Sequence record: OZ196285.1
Length of the DNA stretch: 64,000 bases
Direction: 5' to 3' (one strand)
The position numbers were made by a program, and so were the translations under genes. The notes beneath the pieces are model-generated. The model was not told the DNA's origin, searched no databases, and saw nothing but the letters and a program-made list of their open reading frames with translations. Shown here piece after piece: positions 25,778 to 64,000 of the stretch (position 1 is the stretch's first letter; every line of letters begins with the position of its first letter).

Positions 25778-26831
25778 AGTTCACCATCTTAATGGCGATT
25801 TTGTTGTCCATGTATGACATTTTCTGTTCGAACTCAACATCATATTCAGGTCGGTGCTCGTATTCGACCGAAAGCATTTCTTTCAGACATCGATACAATT
25901 CAGACTTGTAATACCCCTCTGGCATTGTCTGCATTTGCTTGTACTGCGCTTGCATTGCTTCTTTGATGATCTGAGGGTCCATGAACTTGATCGACATTTC
26001 TCGCGGTGCCTTTACAGTACCGAAGTCAACGAATACTTGCGCTTTCTCTGCAACTTGAATGAAGTCATAGATCGTATCATAGCTCATGCGCGATAGCGTG
26101 TGGTGCATACACAAGTGTTTGCTGTGCTCTTTAAGTAGCGGCACGTTAGCTAACATCAAGTCATGGTCGATGTTCTGACGAATGTATTCGTTACGTTCTT
26201 TACCACCGTCACAAGAGATTGTGAACACGATACGATGCTTGTATTCTTTGCAGATTGCTAGAATTTTCTTAGCAAGTGGCGTATGCAATACAGTGCCGTT
26301 CGTCAGAATGAACACTTCAGCTTTAGTATCTTCAAGCACTTCTTTCAGTACGTCGATGGTGCGCTTGTCCATAAAGGGTTCACCTCCATACAAAACAACA
26401 GTCTCGACGCCTTTCGGTATGCTGAAATCAAGCTGCTTGTAATCGTACGTATCTTCAATGTCATACAAGTCCATGTACGTCTTGCTGTTCTTGCCGTAAC
26501 ACATACGACATGCAAGGTTACATTTGTTTGACATTAGAATTTGAATCGTGCGCGGGTGTTCTTCTAGTGCTTCATACTCAAAGTATTTCTGATCAGACAG
26601 TTCACCGTAGCTCATACACTCTTTGCAGTATTCTGGTAAAGTGTCGTATTCGAACATCTTCTCGCGATGTTCATTGATGATGTCTGACGACCACCAATCT
26701 TCAACATTTGGGAATGGCTCAGAAAGCTGAGAACAGCAGATGTGATACCCGTCTGGCTTCGCATCGCGTGTGTTGAATGGAGAGCCGCAAAGCGGCTTCT
26801 TGCCATCTTTAAATCCAAATTTATCAATCAT
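25776..26831 (-). CDS. radical SAM protein with N-terminal SPASM/twitch-like cluster
   Basis: CNLACRMC, YGGEPF, LTNGT, ISCDG; LCGSPF...ICCS...CKEC. Confidence 0.92.
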   Translation of the reverse strand: MIDKFGFKDGKKPLCGSPFNTRDAKPDGYHICCSQLSEPFPNVEDWWSSDIINEHREKMFEYDTLPEYCKECMSYGELSDQKYFEYEALEEHPRTIQILMSNKCNLACRMCYGKNSKTYMDLYDIEDTYDYKQLDFSIPKGVETVVLYGGEPFMDKRTIDVLKEVLEDTKAEVFILTNGTVLHTPLAKKILAICKEYKHRIVFTISCDGGKERNEYIRQNIDHDLMLANVPLLKEHSKHLCMHHTLSRMSYDTIYDFIQVAEKAQVFVDFGTVKAPREMSIKFMDPQIIKEAMQAQYKQMQTMPEGYYKSELYRCLKEMLSVEYEHRPEYDVEFEQKMSYMDNKIAIKMVN

Positions 26832-55295: not shown

Positions 55296-55826
55296 TTAGC
55301 GTCCTTTAGTTTTTTTATATTTCGCTTTCTTATTCTTTCGATTAATCTTGCGAACTTCTTTTCGTTTAGCGATTTTATCAGCTCTTCGCACTGCATCGTA
55401 ATCAGCAGCACAAGACGCTGCAAACGCATCAGGCTTGAATACAGGCTCCTGACCTACATAACCCAAGATCGTGCCCTTAGCTTCGTTATACGCAATGCTA
55501 GACTTATGTTTCGGGTCAGGATTGATATCGACGTGAACTTCAAAGCCACGAGGACCGCACATTGGCTTAACGCGCAACGCACATTCACCTGCTTTGTAGA
55601 CTTCATTCATTAGACGACTGCGAATACCGTCAGTCGCGTTCATGTATGCAGGTTCAGTTTCAACCATCTTGAAGACTTGAGCACCTTTACTGCCTTCCAA
55701 GTGAATTATGATTACAGTCGCATAACTGATTAAATCACTCTTTCGCTTACTGTCACATCCGACATAAATCGTGCTGCTCGGGTGACTATTGCATATCGCT
55801 GTTTCTATTGCTTCCCAATCAAACAT
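55296..55826 (-). CDS. RNase H-like YkuK (DUF458) family protein
   Basis: IYVGCDS, RLMNEV, EVHVDIN, FKPDAFAASCAAD. Confidence 0.8.
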   Translation of the reverse strand: MFDWEAIETAICNSHPSSTIYVGCDSKRKSDLISYATVIIIHLEGSKGAQVFKMVETEPAYMNATDGIRSRLMNEVYKAGECALRVKPMCGPRGFEVHVDINPDPKHKSSIAYNEAKGTILGYVGQEPVFKPDAFAASCAADYDAVRRADKIAKRKEVRKINRKNKKAKYKKTKGR

Positions 55827-55870: not shown

Positions 55871-57319
55871 TTATACTGCGTACCGGTCGATACCAACAGT
55901 CTTCATCATGATCTTCACTGGCTCAAGCTCGCCATCAAGTAAAGAAGTCAGGATAGATGGACTACAACCCGACACAAGTGCCGTACCTGCCTCACCCGTT
56001 TTCACTGGTACGTTGTCTAGACGACCGCGAATGTTCCAGAACGCTAGTTGCGGCATTTCGTAGCCCGCTGCTGCGTATTGAGCTTTGATAGCATCAAAGT
56101 TTGTTTCTGTGCGGCTTGGCCAACCACCACCGCATTTCGCAGTGTTGAATTCCATGTCAGACATGATCAACATCTTCGTAGGCATTTCAGATTGTGGCAA
56201 GTTTGCACGCTGCGCACGCTCCAATAGCACTTCGAAACACTTCTGAATATCAGTGCTCATGTTCTCACCAGAACGACGCATGTTAGCAAGACGCGTTGAC
56301 AGTGTATCACCAACAAGCTTGTGGAAATGTGGATCGCCTGAGAACGAAATGAACTGATCTTTGAAGATACCTTCGTTACGTTCAGCTACGTAGACACCAA
56401 GAGACATCGCTACGTCCATACAAGTTGTAACAGTGCCCTGTGAATAGCAGCTACCTTGTTCTGAGTTAATCGCACAATTCATTGAGCCAGACACATCAAC
56501 AACAGGGATGATGCGCTCGTCAGACCCTTCCATGTAATTCGGAAGTGCTTTCCATTGCTGATCTGCTACACGTGAATCGCCCATTCGTACGCTGCGAACA
56601 ACGTCGTAAGGGAAGACTGCACCTGCATTGATCTTAGCTTCGCCTTTCTCAAGCTTGTTGATGTACTCACCGTAGTTCTCAGCCGCGTTACGACCGAATG
56701 CTTTCTGATAACGCGCAGACGCTACAGATGGCAACTTACCGAAGTCGATCTCGTTCCAGTTCTGTGAACACATTTTCTGTTCAACAGTGTCAGACAGCGT
56801 AGAAATGACCTTACGCCATTGCTTCGATGTCACGCCAAGCGCCTTGATAGTGCGCTTAAACACGATACCGTTTTTACTCTTCTCACGAGGGAACCACTTC
56901 GCAGCCAGTGCGTTTTTGCCGTTCACGATTGCATTTGCCCATAGAGCAATTGCATCAGACTCAAGAGGAGTACCGAACGCAGTCACTAAGTCATCGAAAC
57001 GACCTAATTCTGGCACCTTGTGCATTACAGCACGTGCAACGTCAGGGTTTTTCGCGATAAGTTCAGCGAAAATGCGACGGAAAGTACCGCGCTCACCTGC
57101 ACCACCGCGCACGTCGCGAGACCATAGCAAGATACGTGTTGCTAGTTCAGGGTTTTCACCGTATGCGCGATTGAACGCATGTACTGAATCTTTGTTACCG
57201 CGCATTGCTGCTACAGTAAAGAACAAGTTCAGACACTCGTTACCCGAAGTGCTGTGTGTAATTGCACCGTTTGCTGTACGTGCGTCGTTTGTGCTCATTG
57301 CGTTCATAAATGCTGACAT
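55871..57319 (-). CDS. TROVE/Ro60-like vWA protein (DUF2828)
   Basis: TANGA...CLNLFF, RDVRGGAGER, GRFDD, LAAKWFPRE, DVSGSM MIDAS, IMSDMEF; start 57319 with AGAGG RBS. Confidence 0.85.
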   Translation of the reverse strand: MSAFMNAMSTNDARTANGAITHSTSGNECLNLFFTVAAMRGNKDSVHAFNRAYGENPELATRILLWSRDVRGGAGERGTFRRIFAELIAKNPDVARAVMHKVPELGRFDDLVTAFGTPLESDAIALWANAIVNGKNALAAKWFPREKSKNGIVFKRTIKALGVTSKQWRKVISTLSDTVEQKMCSQNWNEIDFGKLPSVASARYQKAFGRNAAENYGEYINKLEKGEAKINAGAVFPYDVVRSVRMGDSRVADQQWKALPNYMEGSDERIIPVVDVSGSMNCAINSEQGSCYSQGTVTTCMDVAMSLGVYVAERNEGIFKDQFISFSGDPHFHKLVGDTLSTRLANMRRSGENMSTDIQKCFEVLLERAQRANLPQSEMPTKMLIMSDMEFNTAKCGGGWPSRTETNFDAIKAQYAAAGYEMPQLAFWNIRGRLDNVPVKTGEAGTALVSGCSPSILTSLLDGELEPVKIMMKTVGIDRYAV

Positions 57320-57395
57320 TGTGTATTTCCTCTTAAATAATATGCTGTAAAATGTCTTATGCGTTGTATTATACACACGTTTTTACGAGTGTAAA
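57315..57395 (-). promoter_or_regulatory. sigma70 promoter and structured leader of TROVE-like gene
   Basis: TTTACA 57395-57390, 16 bp, TG-TATAAT 57373-57368; leader AGACATT-TTACAGCA...AGAGG...AATGTC pairs over the start codon. Confidence 0.7.
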
Positions 57396-60965: not shown

Positions 60966-61028
60966 GATTTATTCCTCTTTTGTTTTACTCAGCATCGCAC
61001 ATTACGACAGTTTTGTAAACCACAAAAA

Positions 61029-61053
61029 CAAAAAAGCCCCAATTAAGGGGCTT
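61029..61053 (-). terminator. terminator of tRNA operon
   Basis: AAGCCCC-TTAATT-GGGGCTT plus T run on minus strand. Confidence 0.8.
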
Positions 61054-61068
61054 ATTCGTGCAATAATC

Positions 61069-61260
61069 AGACATTCGTGAACAGTTTTAAAGTCTTTCGC
61101 ATAAATCACATTTGACTTTCATGTTTAACGATACATGAATCCCTAACGACGAATCGTCAGTCGTGCCTTCGAGCGTATTGCTTTAAATCACCGAGAAAGC
61201 GGCTATGCGTTGCTCTATTCTTTTAAGTAAGTTTTGTTAGTTGGTTGCAGTACAATGTCT
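61069..61260 (-). ncRNA. structured ncRNA A (Y-RNA-like candidate)
   Basis: Closing stem AGACATT/AATGTCT, GTACTGCAA motif; 45/58 ungapped identity with ncRNA B at 3' end. Confidence 0.7.
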
Positions 61261-61270
61261 TTTGCAAAAT

Positions 61271-61359
61271 TGGCGGAAGCACTGGGAGTCGAACCCAGAG
61301 AACGCTATTAACGTCCGACACCTTAGCAGGGTGCTGTCATACCATTAGACCATGCTTCC
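61271..61359 (-). tRNA. trnS: tRNA-Ser(GCT)
   Basis: Cloverleaf, CT-GCT-AA loop, long variable arm, G73, CCA. Confidence 0.95.
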
Positions 61360-61365
61360 GTAATG

Positions 61366-61442
61366 TGGTGCTCAACCCGAGATTCGAACTCGGACGTTCT
61401 AGTGTTTGAAACTAGTGACTCTGCCAATTGGCCTAGTTGAGC
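61366..61442 (-). tRNA. trnL: tRNA-Leu(CAA), short variable loop
   Basis: TT-CAA-AC loop, A73, CCA. Confidence 0.9.
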
Positions 61443-61448
61443 GATGTT

Positions 61449-61525
61449 TGGTACGCGTGGGCGGATTCGAACCGCCATCCCTGAGATTTTAAGCCTCATG
61501 CCTCTGCCAATTGGACCACACGCGC
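61449..61525 (-). tRNA. trnL: tRNA-Leu(TAA), short variable loop
   Basis: CT-TAA-AA loop, A73, CCA. Confidence 0.9.
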
Positions 61526-61527
61526 AT

Positions 61528-61601
61528 TGGAGCTCGTACAGAGAATCGAACTCTGACCGTGAGATTTGCAATCTCCCATACTACCGTTATACGATACGAG
61601 C
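61528..61601 (-). tRNA. trnC: tRNA-Cys(GCA)
   Basis: TT-GCA-AA loop, U73, CCA. Confidence 0.93.
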
Positions 61602-61616
61602 ATTAAAAATGTACTT

Positions 61617-61693
61617 TGGGGTGACCGACGGGGATCGAACCCGCATCTTCCGGAATCACAACCCGGAGGTATTTCCACTTCACCCACAGCCAC
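61617..61693 (-). tRNA. trnH: tRNA-His(GTG)
   Basis: TT-GTG-AT loop, C73, CCA; genomic -1 base is T. Confidence 0.93.
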
Positions 61694-61785
61694 ACCAAAG
61701 TACACTTCGGGACATATAACGTCTGTCAACCGGACTCATTTACGTGGGTCATTCGAGCAAAGCACAACTTTGCTAGTAAGTTTTC

Positions 61786-62013
61786 TTAACTGAGATAAAT
61801 TCTATCAGGAGAGAGTTCGCGATTAAACATTTTTCTAAAGAAAATTGCAACGTCATCACTAGTGATATTCGACTCGATTTGTTGTGCAAGCTCAAGCACT
61901 TTAACGCGCTTATAGCCTTTACGCCAACAATCAAACATCAATCGATCCATTTGCTTCAATTTCTCGACTTGGTTCGAGTGAACATACTCGTGGGTTTCTA
62001 ATAGCGAACTCAT
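61786..62013 (-). CDS. hypothetical protein in tRNA array
   Basis: 75-aa ORF filling inter-tRNA gap. Confidence 0.6.
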   Translation of the reverse strand: MSSLLETHEYVHSNQVEKLKQMDRLMFDCWRKGYKRVKVLELAQQIESNITSDDVAIFFRKMFNRELSPDRIYLS

Positions 62014-62033
62014 AATAAAAATCTCATAATAAA

Positions 62034-62107
62034 TGGTGTTCCCTAGTGGAGTTGAACCACTGACTCCTCTTTGTAAGAGAGGCGTATTCCCGTTATACTA
62101 AGGGAGC
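62034..62107 (-). tRNA. trnV: tRNA-Val(TAC)
   Basis: CT-TAC-AA loop, A73, CCA. Confidence 0.93.
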
Positions 62108-62112
62108 AGATT

Positions 62113-62188
62113 TGGAACGCGTAACGAGATTCGAACTCGTACTCTCGGTTTGGAAGACCGCAGTGCTACCGTTAAACACCATACGCGC
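62113..62188 (-). tRNA. trnG: tRNA-Gly(TCC)
   Basis: CT-TCC-AA loop, U73, CCA. Confidence 0.93.
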
Positions 62189-62484
62189 ATTGTAAGTTAG
62201 TCAGACGCATTGAACAAGTCTTGAATTGCTTTCAAGTTGGTCAACTCTACTTCAAGTGTTCTTATAAAGAACGGGTTGGTCTCTATTGAGAGACGATATT
62301 CAACATCGCGAATAAATCGACCGATGTTGCCCTTGCTTAGTGTAAAGTAGTCATGCTTCTTTCTCTTCGTTTGAGGTTAGTATTAGATGAACTTGTTCGT
62401 AAACTTCTTGCTCAATCAGCCATTGTTCGTAAACGTAGTCTGCATACAAAAGTGTTTCGTACATACTTCACCTATTTTAAAATG

Positions 62485-62561
62485 TGGTGGTGACTCTGAG
62501 GTTCGAACTCAGTACCAGCGGCGTATGAAACCACGACTTTACCATCATAAGCTAAGTCACC
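62485..62561 (-). tRNA. tRNA with CAT anticodon (elongator Met or Ile2)
   Basis: TT-CAT-AC loop, G1-C72 paired, CCA. Confidence 0.9.
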
Positions 62562-62704
62562 AAAGACGATATTTCTCATTTAATCTGCACACGGGCTAGA
62601 CACCATATTTTAATGGTCTGAGTGAAGAACCTCTGCACAACAATCCCGATCTAATTGCGTTATGTGGTGACTGTCACGAGGAATCGTATCTTCAAATTAG
62701 TATC

Positions 62705-62913
62705 AGGCAATCGCGAAATGTTTTATCGTCTTTTGCATAAATCGCTATTGACTATCTTGTGTATTCTGTACAAGAACATATCACATTTTCGCAAGTGAGG
62801 CTATCATATCATCACTGATATGCACGTCTTGTAATGCTTGAAGTGACACGTTTCCGCTCACCCGCACCAAGAGCCATCTTTGAGTTAGAAAGATTAGTTG
62901 CAGTACATTGCCT
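62705..62913 (-). ncRNA. structured ncRNA B (Y-RNA-like candidate)
   Basis: Closing stem AGGCAAT/ATTGCCT with compensatory changes relative to A; GTACTGCAA motif. Confidence 0.7.
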
Positions 62914-62956
62914 AGCGCACGTTTTAGCCGAAGCAAACGTGAACTCTAATTATGTG

Positions 62957-63032
62957 TGGCACGCCATATAAGATTCGAACTTATAACCCCGAATTTAGAA
63001 GATTCGTGCTCTTCCAATTGAGCTAATAGCGC
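62957..63032 (-). tRNA. trnR: tRNA-Arg(TCT)
   Basis: CT-TCT-AA loop, CCA. Confidence 0.93.
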
Positions 63033-63109
63033 ATCATTAAGAATCGAACCATAAGATCTTGTGACACGATGGTAGTAAAGAGAGTGTCTATCTCATGTGT
63101 TCGAAAATT

Positions 63110-63184
63110 TGGTGGACCGTAAGGGACTCGAACCCTTAACTCCGCCTTGCAAGGGCAGTGTATTCCCACTTATACTAACAGCCC
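63110..63184 (-). tRNA. trnA: tRNA-Ala(TGC)
   Basis: CT-TGC-AA loop, G3:U70, CCA. Confidence 0.95.
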
Positions 63185-63190
63185 AAATTG

Positions 63191-63400
63191 TTATAACTTG
63201 ACGACGTTAATAACTCTCCAAGAGAACAATCCGTCAAGATCTTCTGCCGACTCACCTGTACATGCAGAGAGTTCAGCAACAACTTTCGCCTCGATTTCAT
63301 CGACGCTTAGTGAATCATCTACGATATACGCTTCTTCGTTGTTATTACCACCGAACGCGCCATTAAAATCGTATTCACACCATACAGAAATGAATTTCAT
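63191..63400 (-). CDS. small acidic hypothetical protein in tRNA array
   Basis: MKFISVWCEYDFNG...; GGA RBS. Confidence 0.65.
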   Translation of the reverse strand: MKFISVWCEYDFNGAFGGNNNEEAYIVDDSLSVDEIEAKVVAELSACTGESAEDLDGLFSWRVINVVKL

Positions 63401-63424
63401 TATATATTCCAAAGTTGTAAAAAA

Positions 63425-63499
63425 TGGTGCACCCACTCAGACTCGAACTGAGATAGTCGGATTACAAAACCGATATAATTGCCTTTATATTATGGGTGC
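63425..63499 (-). tRNA. trnT: tRNA-Thr(TGT)
   Basis: TT-TGT-AA loop, C2:G71, CCA. Confidence 0.88.
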
Positions 63500-63504
63500 G
63501 TTAC

Positions 63505-63614
63505 TGAGTGTCGTTTATACCGCGTCTCCAAGACCTGAGCTACCAACTCAGCGTGAGATTCGAACTCACAACGTTTCTTGTATCGAAAGAATTTAAAATT
63601 GCTGTAAACACTCA
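63505..63614 (-). ncRNA. structured ncRNA C with circularly permuted tRNA module (YrlA-like architecture)
   Basis: Closing stem TGAGTGT/ACACTCA, TTACAGCAA motif, anticodon-like arm, T-arm GTGAG-TTCGAAT-CTCAC, closed acceptor-like hairpin. Confidence 0.7.
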
Positions 63615-63622
63615 ATGGTATC

Positions 63623-63697
63623 TGGAAGGGCTAACAGGATTTGAACCCGTACTCCGAAAGTCAAAGTTTCGTATGCTACCAGTTACATCATAGCCCT
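63623..63697 (-). tRNA. trnQ: tRNA-Gln(TTG)
   Basis: CT-TTG-AC loop, CCA. Confidence 0.9.
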
Positions 63698-63707
63698 ATT
63701 GTTTGTC

Positions 63708-63856
63708 AAGACATCTTACACGACGGCGTAAGTGAACGTTCTAATGGTTAGTTCAGAATCCACGTCATAATATTGATGCTATATTCGCGCCACTATCTGC
63801 TGATAGATATGTTATGCATCATCTATGCAGACTCTTCTTGCGCTGTAAATTGCCTT
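63708..63856 (-). ncRNA. structured ncRNA D (same family)
   Basis: AAGGCAAT-TTACAGC 5' arm pairs with TGTAA-G-ATGTCTT 3' arm. Confidence 0.55.
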
Positions 63857-63896
63857 CTTATGATATGAGACTGTCACTTCTCAAATCACGACAAAT

Positions 63897-63971
63897 TGGC
63901 GGTCCCGAAGGGAATCGAACCCTCATCTCAGCATAGACAGTGCAGCATAATTGCCATTATACGACGAGACC
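63897..63971 (-). tRNA. trnD: tRNA-Asp(GTC)
   Basis: CT-GTC-TA loop, G73, CCA. Confidence 0.92.
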
Positions 63972-64000
63972 TTTAAATTAAGTACAGTAATCGTTTTAGT

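Follow-up and report, generated by a model that had tools for sequence, protein, structure and literature searches.

The window analysed here, a 64-kb stretch of the genome of the KVP40-like Vibrio phage F86, carries an array of thirteen tRNA genes with which four non-coding RNAs (A-D) are interleaved. The array extends past the window end (position 64000), where a fifth RNA (E) crosses the boundary, and a gene for a DUF2828 protein lies 3.7 kb from RNA A and 5.4-6.7 kb from RNAs B-E; the mRNA leader of this gene contains a further copy of the module that the RNAs share. The five RNAs, the leader copy and the gene are all on the minus strand (Table 1). ARAGORN and the Rfam tRNA model (RF00005) found only the 13 flanking tRNAs, none of which overlaps A-D. 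RNA A closes the tRNA operon, and the terminator-like hairpin that follows it probably marks where the tRNA/ncRNA transcription unit ends. A previous reading of this DNA from its letters (the sequence-only reading) had each RNA begin just after a tRNA, which does not always hold, since the distance from the preceding tRNA ranges from 8 to 43 nt. Element content also varies among relatives: D is known only from F86 and the 6E35/D484/K566 group, and an additional element, F, only from KVP40, nt-1 and VH7D. The tRNA arrays of KVP40-like phages are insertion hot spots, for example for homing endonuclease genes.

Table 1. Coordinates of the RNA elements, the DUF2828 gene and associated features in the F86 window.
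Feature	Position	Strand	Description
DUF2828/DUF7788 protein, 482 aa	55871..57319	-	Pfam; PHROG 850 'RNA-binding protein'
Module copy, DUF2828 mRNA 5' leader	57314..57357	-	(A)GACATT, TTACAGC, 3' arm AATGTC(A)
Sigma-70-like promoter, DUF2828 gene	57368..57395	-	TTTACA, 16 nt, TATAAT; conserved in relatives
Terminator-like hairpin, intrinsic type	61034..61053	-	With T-run; 16 nt 3' of RNA A
RNA A, 192 nt, long class	61069..61260	-	Closing stem AGACATT/AATGTCT, GTACTGCAAC motif
Thirteen tRNA genes	61271..63971	-	RNAs A-D interleaved; context
RNA B, 209 nt, long class	62705..62913	-	Closing stem AGGCAAT/ATTGCCT, GTACTGCAAC motif, then G
RNA C, 110 nt, reduced tRNA-mimic class	63505..63614	-	Closing stem TGAGTGT/ACACTCA, TTACAGCAA
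RNA D, 149 nt, divergent member	63708..63856	-	Imperfect closing stem, TTACAGCGC
RNA E 3' end, short class	63986..64000	-	Continues to 64048 beyond the window; 63 nt in total

RNAs A, B and C share a perfect 7-bp Watson-Crick closing stem whose 5' arm is followed by one spacer base and then TAC(A/T)GCAA, with stems and coordinates as the sequence-only reading had claimed. At the RNA level, the module thus reads as a stem, a spacer base, U-N-C-N-G-C-A-A and a G past the 3' arm (in RNA A, the G at 61068, immediately beyond the arm). A strict module, defined as seven Watson-Crick pairs, the motif and the G after the 3' arm, occurs three times in the window, always on the minus strand and always in the tRNA array, vs a mean of 0.2 (maximum 2) in 200 shuffles. 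Across lineages, the 5'-strand motif follows the consensus N-U-N-C-A/U-G-C-A-A, stem pair 2 is G-C in 40/40 sequences and the conserved G is the one directly after the 3' arm; the bulged G that had been described before this arm is real, but restricted to the KVP40-like lineage. The G-U pairs that had been assigned to the stems of B and D reduce to one in D, and B has none within its 7 bp. Closing stems comprised 34 distinct sequences and reached a covariation score of 0.945 (vs 0.198 in shuffles), G-U pairs being tolerated and other mismatches nearly absent. Single-sequence folding energies of the F86 elements were not significant (z = -0.6 to -1.6); the support for these RNA structures is comparative, not thermodynamic. 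When F86 was compared with the 6E35/D484 group, nt-1, KVP40 and VH7D, compensatory changes appeared for B, C and D both in the closing stem and in internal hairpins. The closing stem of RNA A and the leader stem are invariant and show no covariation of their own, and because of this the compensatory changes of RNA A are confined to its internal hairpins. A family of structured non-coding RNAs, as first suspected from the sequence, is thus supported.

The RNAs of this family fall into three size classes: short A-rich hairpins of ~55-65 nt, mid-sized tRNA mimics and long RNAs of 200-280 nt. RNA A, which has orthologues in 6E35, K566, nt-1, KVP40 and VH7D with five compensatory pairs, is paralogous to RNA B through a common 3' block. 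RNA B has ten covarying pairs in total, including stem pair 3, which is G-C in F86 vs A-U in 6E35, nt-1, KVP40 and VH7D. No homology of the A and B interiors to long-class RNAs of other phages was detectable. Inside RNA C are one V-like and one T-arm-like hairpin (the latter with the loop GTTCGAATC), a hairpin whose TTGGTA loop resembles a D-loop, and a small hairpin referred to as the third; covariation supports the T-arm-like and the D-loop-like one and, by inspection, the third. A clear acceptor-like hairpin is absent from RNA C, which matches neither the Rfam tRNA model nor the YrlA model, and RNAs A, B, D and E lack any tRNA-like domain. RNA D, which the sequence-only reading had treated like the others, is an imperfect copy: its stem has 6 bp, one of them G-U, then a bulged A and one further pair, and its motif is altered (TACAGCGC where A-C have ..GCAA), with a UACA that could base-pair with UGUA close to the 3' end. 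In the 6E35/D484/K566 group, the D stem is clean (AGATAAT/GTTATCT, then G) and seven compensatory pairs are found. RNA E (L002 9049-8987) combines the stem AGTAATC/GATTACT, the ATTCTGCAAAC motif and an A-rich loop. It scores 36.1 bits (E = 5.7e-8) against R1, a covariance model of the module that was trained without Listeria or Mycobacterium phage sequences, and its orthologues in nt-1, KVP40 and VH7D carry a U-A to C-G compensatory change.

The copy in the DUF2828 leader, which had been spotted 3.7 kb away from the array (57357-57314, AGACATT TTACAGC ... AATGTCA), is kept in six of seven KVP40-like phages, and R1 gives weak matches exactly at the KVP40, 6E35 and nt-1 leaders. Its loop contains the Shine-Dalgarno sequence and its 3' arm the ATG (57319-57317). 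As for the protein itself, existing annotations of DUF2828 homologues say merely 'RNA-binding' or 'Ro-like' and name no RNA partner. Pfam (E <= 0.01) detected only DUF2828 and DUF7788 and left TROVE unmatched, and a phmmer search of PDB sequences returned no Ro60, including that of Thermus phage phiRo60. An AlphaFold2 model (pLDDT 82, pTM 0.80), however, predicts a Ro60-like ring built from helical (HEAT-like) repeats, with a vWA domain after it. Foldseek comparison of this model with the PDB gave Ro60 for all top eight matches (1yvr, 9kop, 9l5y, 2i91, 9nf8, 1yvp and 2nvo), full-length and with E = 2e-8 to 2e-6, at moderate TM-scores (0.46-0.63). The MIDAS motif (DxSxS ... T ... D) is intact, residues D275, S277, S279, T356 and D388 being invariant in 54 homologues. 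Homologues occur in 711 phage records in one collection and number more than 7,500 in metagenomes; phages of Staphylococcus and Enterococcus also have them.

The connection between the module and the DUF2828 gene was examined in 80 unrelated viral contigs that encode a DUF2828 homologue (1.28 Mb). Under a full definition, which required 7 bp, G-C as the second pair and the 3' G, 102 modules were found on the DUF2828 gene strand and none on the opposite strand. At least one strict module was present in 59/80 loci and at least two in 21/80, with one to six modules at the loci that have them; the 21/80 loci that lack a strict module include many with 6-bp variants or short flanks. Downstream of the DUF2828 genes (78 IMG/VR regions), the motif occurred 140 times vs 12.6 in shuffles, and the motif with flanking arms 99 times vs 4.8. 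The first kb downstream contained 102 gene-strand modules, vs 2-9/kb on the other strand except for a single bin of 16 at 6-7 kb upstream. Modules usually start 25-70 nt past the DUF2828 stop codon; tandem copies are frequent, and so are positions among tRNA or tmRNA genes. In F86, by contrast, the RNAs are 3.7-6.7 kb away from the gene. The same association was seen in cultured phages: modules are linked to the DUF2828 homologues of coliphage Bas63, Listeria phages P100 and CKA15 and mycobacteriophage Faith1, and R1 finds the copies adjoining the P100, CKA15 and Faith1 genes with E = 1e-7 to 6e-4. In Bas63, where gp130 shares 42% identity with the F86 protein and has the same Pfam domains, the modules occupy gaps between tRNAs. 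Altogether, the link to a TROVE-like gene that the sequence-only reading had drawn from one genome is supported, more strongly than that genome could show, by physical linkage to DUF2828, in viral contigs and cultured phages alike, and by a Ro60-like predicted fold. The notion of several payload RNAs per protein holds as a matter of genome architecture, in the number of modules per locus and in their short, tRNA-mimic and long classes.

This distribution bears on what the module could otherwise be. It might do no more than act in cis on the DUF2828 mRNA, as an operator or UTR element that regulates translation or stability, its tRNA-array copies being decoys or relics rather than functional RNP subunits; the leader copy does overlap the Shine-Dalgarno and AUG, and modules are mostly in the gene's own 3' UTR (or, in CKA15, the 5' leader). 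We consider this unlikely, since other copies lie kb away in separate tRNA operons, orthologous and with compensatory changes across KVP40-like phages, since as many as six copies occur per locus, and since large conserved structured payloads, full tRNA mimics among them, would be needless for a simple operator. The elements might instead be processing or stability structures of the tRNA operon, or by-product RNAs like T4 species 1 and 2, which would work with host RNases and be unrelated to DUF2828. They are indeed interleaved with tRNAs in F86, Bas63, L047 and L064 (and modules occur inside tRNA and tmRNA arrays of further phages), a 7-bp terminal helix with an unpaired purine resembles an acceptor stem with its discriminator base, and T4 rnaC/rnaD sit at the same end of the tRNA cluster, with a T-arm in rnaC. 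Yet a module follows the DUF2828 gene in L013, L037 and L080, where the ~20 kb of locus examined contain no tRNA, and in most lineages it is placed directly past the gene's stop codon or in its leader. Conversely, the 6-kb T4 tRNA region, which has no annotated DUF2828 gene, gave no R1 match at E <= 1; to our knowledge, the conserved single-stranded motif is not a determinant for RNase P, Z or E. A role independent of DUF2828 is thus quite improbable. Finally, it is very improbable that the paired arms are not RNA stems but inverted repeats, acting at the DNA level, at the termini of small mobile insertions that target tRNA arrays: such arrays attract homing endonuclease genes and elements D and F do differ between relatives, but the strand bias is absolute (102 vs 0), the motif is on a single arm, G-U pairs are tolerated with almost no other mismatch, internal hairpins covary, tRNA-like T and D arms exist and no target-site duplications were noticed.

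A relationship to Ro60/Y-RNA systems fits these features better. Ro60 proteins take up Y RNA on the outer surface of the ring and the ends of single-stranded RNA in its central hole. Ro60 binds the closing stem of Y RNAs, the other end of which is an effector or tRNA-like module (PMC4201824). The F86 locus parallels bacterial Ro60 (Rsr)/Y RNA, and YrlA (RF02553; PMC4201824) in particular, in a predicted vWA ring protein, in RNAs whose 5' and 3' ends pair as a closing stem with a conserved 5'-strand motif beside it, in a variable second module (in many members a permuted tRNA mimic: V, T, acceptor-like, D) and in several RNAs per protein, on the same strand and near the gene. The YrlA order (V hairpin, T-arm, acceptor-like hairpin, D-arm) is found in the mid-sized RNAs of L037, L047, L064, Bas63 and Faith1. 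Against such RNAs, the Rfam YrlA model scored 38.2 bits (E = 2.4e-6) and 21.7 bits, below its gathering score of 69 bits, and it aligned solely 3' of the phage-module motif and found no CGAA; it did not match the F86 elements even at E <= 10. Several features set the phage family apart: its protein is DUF2828/DUF7788 and not Pfam TROVE, it adds ~55-65-nt A-rich hairpins and 200-280-nt classes, its RNAs are interleaved with tRNA genes and a KVP40-like copy lies in the gene's own translation-initiation region. Instead of GNCGAAN0-1G, the bacterial Y RNA motif, the phage module has U-N-C-A/U-G-C-A-A, a second stem pair that is always G-C and a G after the 3' arm, and the canonical Ro-binding motif, be it the bacterial one or the bulged GGUCCGA helix of animals, is absent from the module; the distinct motif that had been asserted from F86 is borne out across the family.

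Phage precedents exist. The Ro60 of Thermus phage phiLo, phiRo60 (PDB 9KOP, 9L5Y), binds the phage Yrl RNAs as well as host PNPase, and counter-defence by engaging host PNPase has been proposed (PMC12135203). It is likewise a phage ring with two partner RNAs (Yrl1/Yrl2) beside its gene, and its structures are the second and third best Foldseek matches of the F86 protein; phiRo60, however, is a recognised Ro60 homologue whose Yrl RNAs carry CGAA, whereas the F86 RNAs use another motif. True homologues of the F86 protein are Bas63 gp130 (PhageMaP preprint, PMC11482910) and CKA15_055 (PMC12282133), which corresponds to P100 gp165 (~33% identical to the F86 protein). The former resembles Ro60 in structure and acts against the ppl defence (PMC11482910), and the latter was matched to Rsr by HHpred (PMC12282133). 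Both studies noted the Ro60/Rsr similarity and guessed at nearby Y RNAs, leaving the RNAs unnamed (PMC11482910; PMC12282133). One of the two took some annotated tRNA genes as Y RNAs, whereas the modules are in the inter-tRNA gaps; the other proposed an abundant ~490-nt transcript, which has no module, whereas three modules lie directly upstream of the CKA15 gene, in the 5' leader. A gp130 plasmid, with RNA elements on the construct unreported, restored plaquing of T7, a different phage, on a ppl host (PMC11482910); therefore, the anti-ppl activity of gp130 may not require phage RNAs. The T4 rnaC/rnaD analogy, offered by the sequence-only reading as an alternative, is positional: these are also small stable RNAs at the distal end of a T4-type tRNA cluster, but no closing stem with the motif was seen in them and R1 gives no match there at E <= 1. 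An Rfam search gave no rnaC or rnaD match in the 64-kb window, and neither Rfam nor the literature searched yielded a family or a paper describing the module RNAs. We know of no DUF2828 protein in T4.

Taken together, A, B, C, E and probably D, along with the leader copy, likely belong to a widespread phage non-coding RNA family that we propose to be the RNA partners of the Ro60-like DUF2828 protein, the association in F86 being suggested by genomic linkage. The locus is best read as a phage version of the Ro60/Y-RNA system that has diverged, uses a new recognition module and supplies several payload RNAs from each genome.

From this we infer the following scheme for binding, autoregulation, payload function and biological role. 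The RNAs would be co-transcribed with the tRNAs and then excised by tRNA-processing enzymes, after which the 5' and 3' ends of each RNA would close as a 7-8-bp helix. This helix, with N-U-N-C-A/U-G-C-A-A, the second G-C pair and the 3' G, would form a common protein docking site, a parallel to the conserved Y RNA stem that docks Ro60. The payload would be the variable interior, which in E is just an A-rich loop, in C resembles a tRNA and in A, B and D consists of larger folded domains. Depending on its payload, the ring may be steered or gated toward different partners or substrates, for example exoribonucleases or enzymes that recognise tRNA. In KVP40-like phages, the leader copy would sequester the Shine-Dalgarno and AUG, so that free protein could repress translation of its own mRNA. 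As to the biological role, the system most likely serves counter-defence during infection through surveillance or turnover of RNA.

A broader reading, which is possible but which we hold only tentatively, is that of a phage-wide programmable RNP platform, in which the ring would recognise its RNAs by a universal docking code made up of the helix, UNCAGCAA and the 3' G, and exchangeable payloads (tRNA mimics, long folded RNAs, bare hairpins) would set what it captures or blocks. The RNAs would be matured by the cell's tRNA-processing machinery and the protein would autoregulate through its mRNA copy. Such a platform would extend over T4-like Vibrio phages, Felixounaviruses, Listeria Pecentumviruses, cluster L mycobacteriophages and many uncultured phages.

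Ro60/Y-RNA particles are conserved between bacteria and humans, and what they do is still a matter of debate; few canonical phage cases are known. DUF2828 proteins are far commoner than canonical phage Ro60, and defining a partner RNA family provides a precise, searchable signature for them. With this signature, many 'hypothetical protein' calls between phage tRNA genes can be reclassified as RNA genes, and some of what phage tRNA arrays contain besides tRNAs is accounted for. Bas63 on E. coli K-12 and P100/CKA15 on Listeria offer model systems for which a counter-defence phenotype and transcriptome data exist, making testable how a Ro-type ring recognises RNA by a different code and what purpose tRNA-mimic payloads serve. 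If the platform reading is true, these phages would hold the main, previously unseen branch of Ro60/Y-RNA systems and a general RNA-based device for phage counter-defence.

The window spans bases 124001-188000 of Vibrio phage F86 (OZ196285.1), a KVP40-like member of the Straboviridae whose tRNA array extends past the window end (25 tRNAs in the fetched locus L002). The sequence-only reading had proposed four RNAs, A to D, between these tRNAs, each with a closing stem and a motif. This description stands for A, B and C but only in part for D, which carries a weaker copy of both (Table). The 64-kb window holds three copies of the strict module (7-bp stem, spacer base, motif, G after the 3' arm), every one on the minus strand within the tRNA array; the mean over 200 shuffles of the window was 0.2, and none of them contained three. 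D is an atypical member; in the relatives 6E35, D484 and K566 it has an unbroken 7-8-bp stem with a G after it. A fifth member, E, is a short hairpin. A and B are paralogues sharing a common 5' motif and a ~60-nt conserved block at the 3' end, and a terminator-like hairpin lies 3' of A. The interior of C holds three hairpins: one is T-arm-like (GTTCGAATC loop), another has a TTGGTA loop that resembles a D-loop, and the third is small. Folded as single sequences, the elements form their closing stems, with energies no better than those of shuffles. The proposed comparison with Rfam returned no described family for any F86 element, even at E <= 10; applied to the window, to C by itself and to seven other loci, with gathering thresholds as well as permissive E-values, it gave tRNAs and noise only.

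Coordinates of the candidate RNAs, the DUF2828 gene and associated features (L numbers are fetched phage or contig loci)
Feature	Locus	Coordinates	Strand	Description
RNase H-like gene (PF04308)	F86 window	55296-55826	minus	immediately 3' of the Ro-like (DUF2828) gene
DUF2828 ('TROVE-like') gene	F86 window	55871-57319	minus	482 aa; Pfam DUF2828 and DUF7788; PHROG 850 'RNA-binding protein'
Leader copy of the module	F86 window	57357-57314	minus	stem sequence shared with A, and TTACAGC
13 tRNA genes	F86 window	61271-63971	minus	tRNA array in the window
RNA A	F86 window	61260-61069	minus	perfect 7-bp Watson-Crick stem, spacer base, TAC(A/T)GCAA, G right after 3' arm
RNA B	F86 window	62913-62705	minus	as A
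RNA C	F86 window	63614-63505	minus	as A
RNA D	F86 window	63856-63708	minus	6 bp, bulged A, one more pair; GCGC in place of GCAA
RNA E	F86 window	64048-63986	minus	63-nt hairpin between tRNA-Trp and tRNA-Asp; truncated by window end
Non-coding segment, ~140 nt	F86 window	62564-62704	minus	B to tRNA-Met
G+C-rich hairpin	F86 window	62920-62952	minus	GCTTCGGC loop; between tRNA-Arg and B start
Short 'hypothetical protein' CDSs	F86 window	61002-61109, 62655-62798, 63776-63868		in public OZ196285.1; overlap A, B, D or terminator
Oversized 'tRNAs'	F86, L002	14188-14307, 14321-14441	minus	~5 kb past window end
Similar oversized 'tRNA'	L001	2657-2766
Homing-endonuclease gene	Vibrio phage D484, L004	15369-15959		directly upstream of DUF2828 gene
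RNA F, 87 nt	KVP40, nt-1, VH7D (L006, L003, L007)	L006 9933-9847, L003 7607-7693, L007 1260-1346		stem AGCTTGC/GCAAGCT, ATACTGCAAT
DUF2828 surroundings	Listeria phage P100, L089	9780-15227
~490-nt transcript	CKA15, L090	1708-2199 (record 26236-26727)		next to tRNA-Pro; own strong promoter
tmRNA genes	L047, L049, L057, L081	8605-9054, 16119-16479, 15822-16176, 17292-17661		1-3 kb upstream of module RNAs and tRNA-Met

Several other features of the array were seen. The non-coding segment next to B shares a part with KVP40, namely a block that ends in ..GGTGTC.AGCCCGTGTGC, and gave neither a module nor an Rfam match. The G+C-rich hairpin has a similar counterpart at the same place in KVP40 and may be a processing or stability element. 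The short CDS calls over A, B, D or the terminator are probably annotation artefacts; comparable calls cover C in D484 and K566, and lie over or beside inter-tRNA modules in Bas63 (bas63_0137/0138). The oversized 'tRNAs' of F86, of L001 and of KVP40 (tRNA-Pseudo-3/4/5) measure 110-124 nt and have normal acceptor, D and T arms, with a ~45-nt insert replacing the anticodon arm; the inserts of the two F86 copies hold TTCAGCAAT or TGCTGCAAAC, similar to the motif of the module. These 'tRNAs' may represent non-permuted tRNA bodies bearing the same docking sequence; a search with R1, our covariance model of the short members, did not flag them.

A, B, C and E have orthologues in 6E35.1a, nt-1, KVP40 and VH7D, and A, B, C and D are present in the D484/K566 group. 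That these are structured RNAs, as first proposed, is borne out by compensatory changes in the closing stems of B (pair 3, G-C in F86 and A-U elsewhere), E (U-A to C-G) and D (C-G to U-A), and by internal hairpins that covary among KVP40-like phages. RNAalifold found seven compensatory pairs between the two lineages of D (F86 vs 6E35/D484/K566), and all three hairpins of C show compensatory changes; the stems of A and of the DUF2828 leader copy are invariant. A further member, F, found in KVP40, nt-1 and VH7D but not in F86, shows that RNA content varies among close relatives.

The claim that the stem and motif recur in the leader of the TROVE-like gene also held: this copy, with its Shine-Dalgarno in the loop, its ATG in the 3' arm and a promoter (TTTACA-16-TATAAT) upstream, is kept together with the promoter in six of seven KVP40-like phages. 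The copy itself suggests translational autoregulation. The exception is D484, where the leader (module included) and the first codons are unlike those of the other six, apparently because the putative operator was lost naturally. Among neighbouring genes we found no conserved protein partner besides DUF2828: the PF04308 RNase H-like gene and the small upstream genes were rejected as such, being conserved in KVP40-like phages only, and the PF04308 gene is not in the same position in the other 78 viral contigs.

The proposed link between RNAs and gene was examined in 80 viral contigs, each encoding a homologue that shares 44-76% identity with the F86 protein. Nearly every contig has an element built in this way that begins ~25-70 nt past the DUF2828 stop codon, and the columns T..C.GCAA are at least 90% conserved over 78 downstream regions that are otherwise unalignable. 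Downstream counts reached 140 for the motif (12.6 in shuffles) and 99 for the motif with arms (4.8 in shuffles), with 34 different stem sequences among 68 distinct elements. The first kb downstream holds 102 modules on the gene strand, the other strand 2-9 per kb save for one bin of 16, 6-7 kb upstream. With the full definition (7 bp, <=1 G-U, G-C second pair, 3' G), 1.28 Mb of sequence held 102 modules on the gene strand and none on the other, and 59 of the 80 loci had at least one (maximum six). These counts, the central result of the analysis, support the link. Elsewhere among the contigs, modules also cluster amid tRNA and tmRNA genes, or stand as a tandem run of five upstream of the DUF2828 gene. 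In an alignment of 40 short members, flush-trimmed and re-aligned after MAFFT had put some 3' arms out of register, stem pairing reaches 98.9%, a figure true by construction as rows were picked for paired arms; the shuffles and opposite-strand counts are controls independent of that selection. The stem covariation score was 0.945 vs 0.198 in shuffles, the second pair was G-C in 40/40 and the base after the 3' arm was always G. Phage tmRNA genes were also seen upstream of module RNAs in four loci (Table).

R1, built from this alignment, recovered E of F86 (E = 5.7e-8); the long interiors of A, B and D are beyond its reach, and on C it scores only 14 bits. It also recovered copies beside the DUF2828 homologues in Listeria phages P100 and CKA15 and in mycobacteriophage Faith1 (E = 1e-7 to 6e-4), none of them used in building it, and matched nothing in the tRNA region of T4 at E <= 1. 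Faith1 has three modules 3' of gp55 (DUF2828 + DUF7788), CKA15 three with their own promoter upstream of CKA15_055, and Bas63 four in inter-tRNA gaps just 3' of gp130, whose product shares 42% identity with that of F86. In P100, genes annotated as an RtcB-type tRNA splicing ligase, an RNA ligase, a tRNA amidotransferase and a phosphoesterase follow ~1.3-6.7 kb downstream of the DUF2828 gene on its own strand, an RNA-repair neighbourhood that fits a role in RNA metabolism.

The RNAs fall into three size classes: short hairpins of ~50-70 nt with an A-rich loop, mid-sized (100-190 nt) and long (200-285 nt). Outside the KVP40 group, many of the mid-sized RNAs clearly are permuted tRNA mimics, with a V hairpin, canonical T-arm, acceptor-like hairpin and canonical D-arm following the module, which is the architecture of the bacterial Y RNA YrlA (PMC4201824); C of F86 resembles a pared-down member of this class. 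The Rfam YrlA model scored 38.2 bits (E = 2.4e-6) on one mid-sized mimic and 21.7 bits on that of Faith1 (gathering score 69). Both alignments begin after the new motif and contain no CGAA, in agreement with the earlier remark that the motif differs from the bacterial consensus. The mimics sit among copies more distal from the DUF2828 gene; a T-loop scan of gene-adjacent elements found none. Profiles of the other phages' short, mid and long classes (nhmmer) matched F86 and its relatives weakly, at the 5' module only, and the interiors of A and B had no detectable homology to other phages' long RNAs; a common AGAC..AAAAC patch close to the 3' end was discounted as too short.

An AlphaFold2 model of the DUF2828 protein, built from 54 homologues, reached pLDDT 82 and pTM 0.80. 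Against the PDB, the top eight matches were without exception Ro60 proteins (from Xenopus, human, Deinococcus (Rsr) and Thermus phage phiLo), full-length, with E = 2e-8 to 2e-6 and TM 0.46-0.63; later matches cover the vWA domain only. The MIDAS residues are invariant. By sequence, the F86 protein matched neither Pfam TROVE nor any solved Ro60; it appears Ro60-like by predicted fold, yet fails sequence-family membership.

Canonical Ro60 with CGAA-type Y-like RNAs is known in some phages (PMC4201824; PMC12135203), and the 2014 YrlA study searched genomes annotated with a TROVE-domain protein. For RNA partners of DUF2828 proteins we found guesses only, and no description of the module family in accessible papers or Rfam. 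A PhageMaP preprint (PMC11482910) reported that Bas63 gp130 is structurally Ro60-like and counters the ppl defence, and guessed that some annotated Bas63 tRNAs might be Y RNAs; a plasmid expressing gp130 restored plaquing of a different phage, T7, on the ppl host, and the preprint does not say whether the construct carried phage RNA elements as well. The CKA15 study (PMC12282133) matched CKA15_055 to Rsr and guessed that a ~490-nt RNA, reported as that phage's most abundant transcript, might be a Y RNA; this large ncRNA does not contain the module.

Three other explanations fit worse. Were the elements purely tRNA-operon processing structures or analogues of T4 rnaC/rnaD, the module would not be expected to track the DUF2828 gene, as it does even without a tRNA in the ~20 kb of locus examined. 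A purely cis-acting UTR operator would not account for distal copies kept with structured payloads, and DNA-level inverted repeats fit poorly with an absolute strand bias and tolerated G-U pairs. The best-supported reading, drawn from comparative genomics, is a divergent phage-specific Ro60/Y-RNA system in which one ring protein would serve several RNAs through a common docking module. This putative module would comprise a terminal helix with a G-C second pair, U-N-C-A/U-G-C-A-A on the 5' strand (the UNCAGCAA strand) and a 3' G, on RNAs that differ in their payload domains; in F86 the RNAs, embedded in the tRNA operon, would be freed by tRNA processing. We infer that the protein binds these RNAs, that the leader copy adjusts its translation, that the payloads are functional and that the system acts in RNA turnover or counter-defence, as hinted at by the Bas63 phenotype. 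Altogether, the initial observation is confirmed and its interpretation supported by comparison across genomes, and the RNA family appears to be both undescribed and very widespread.
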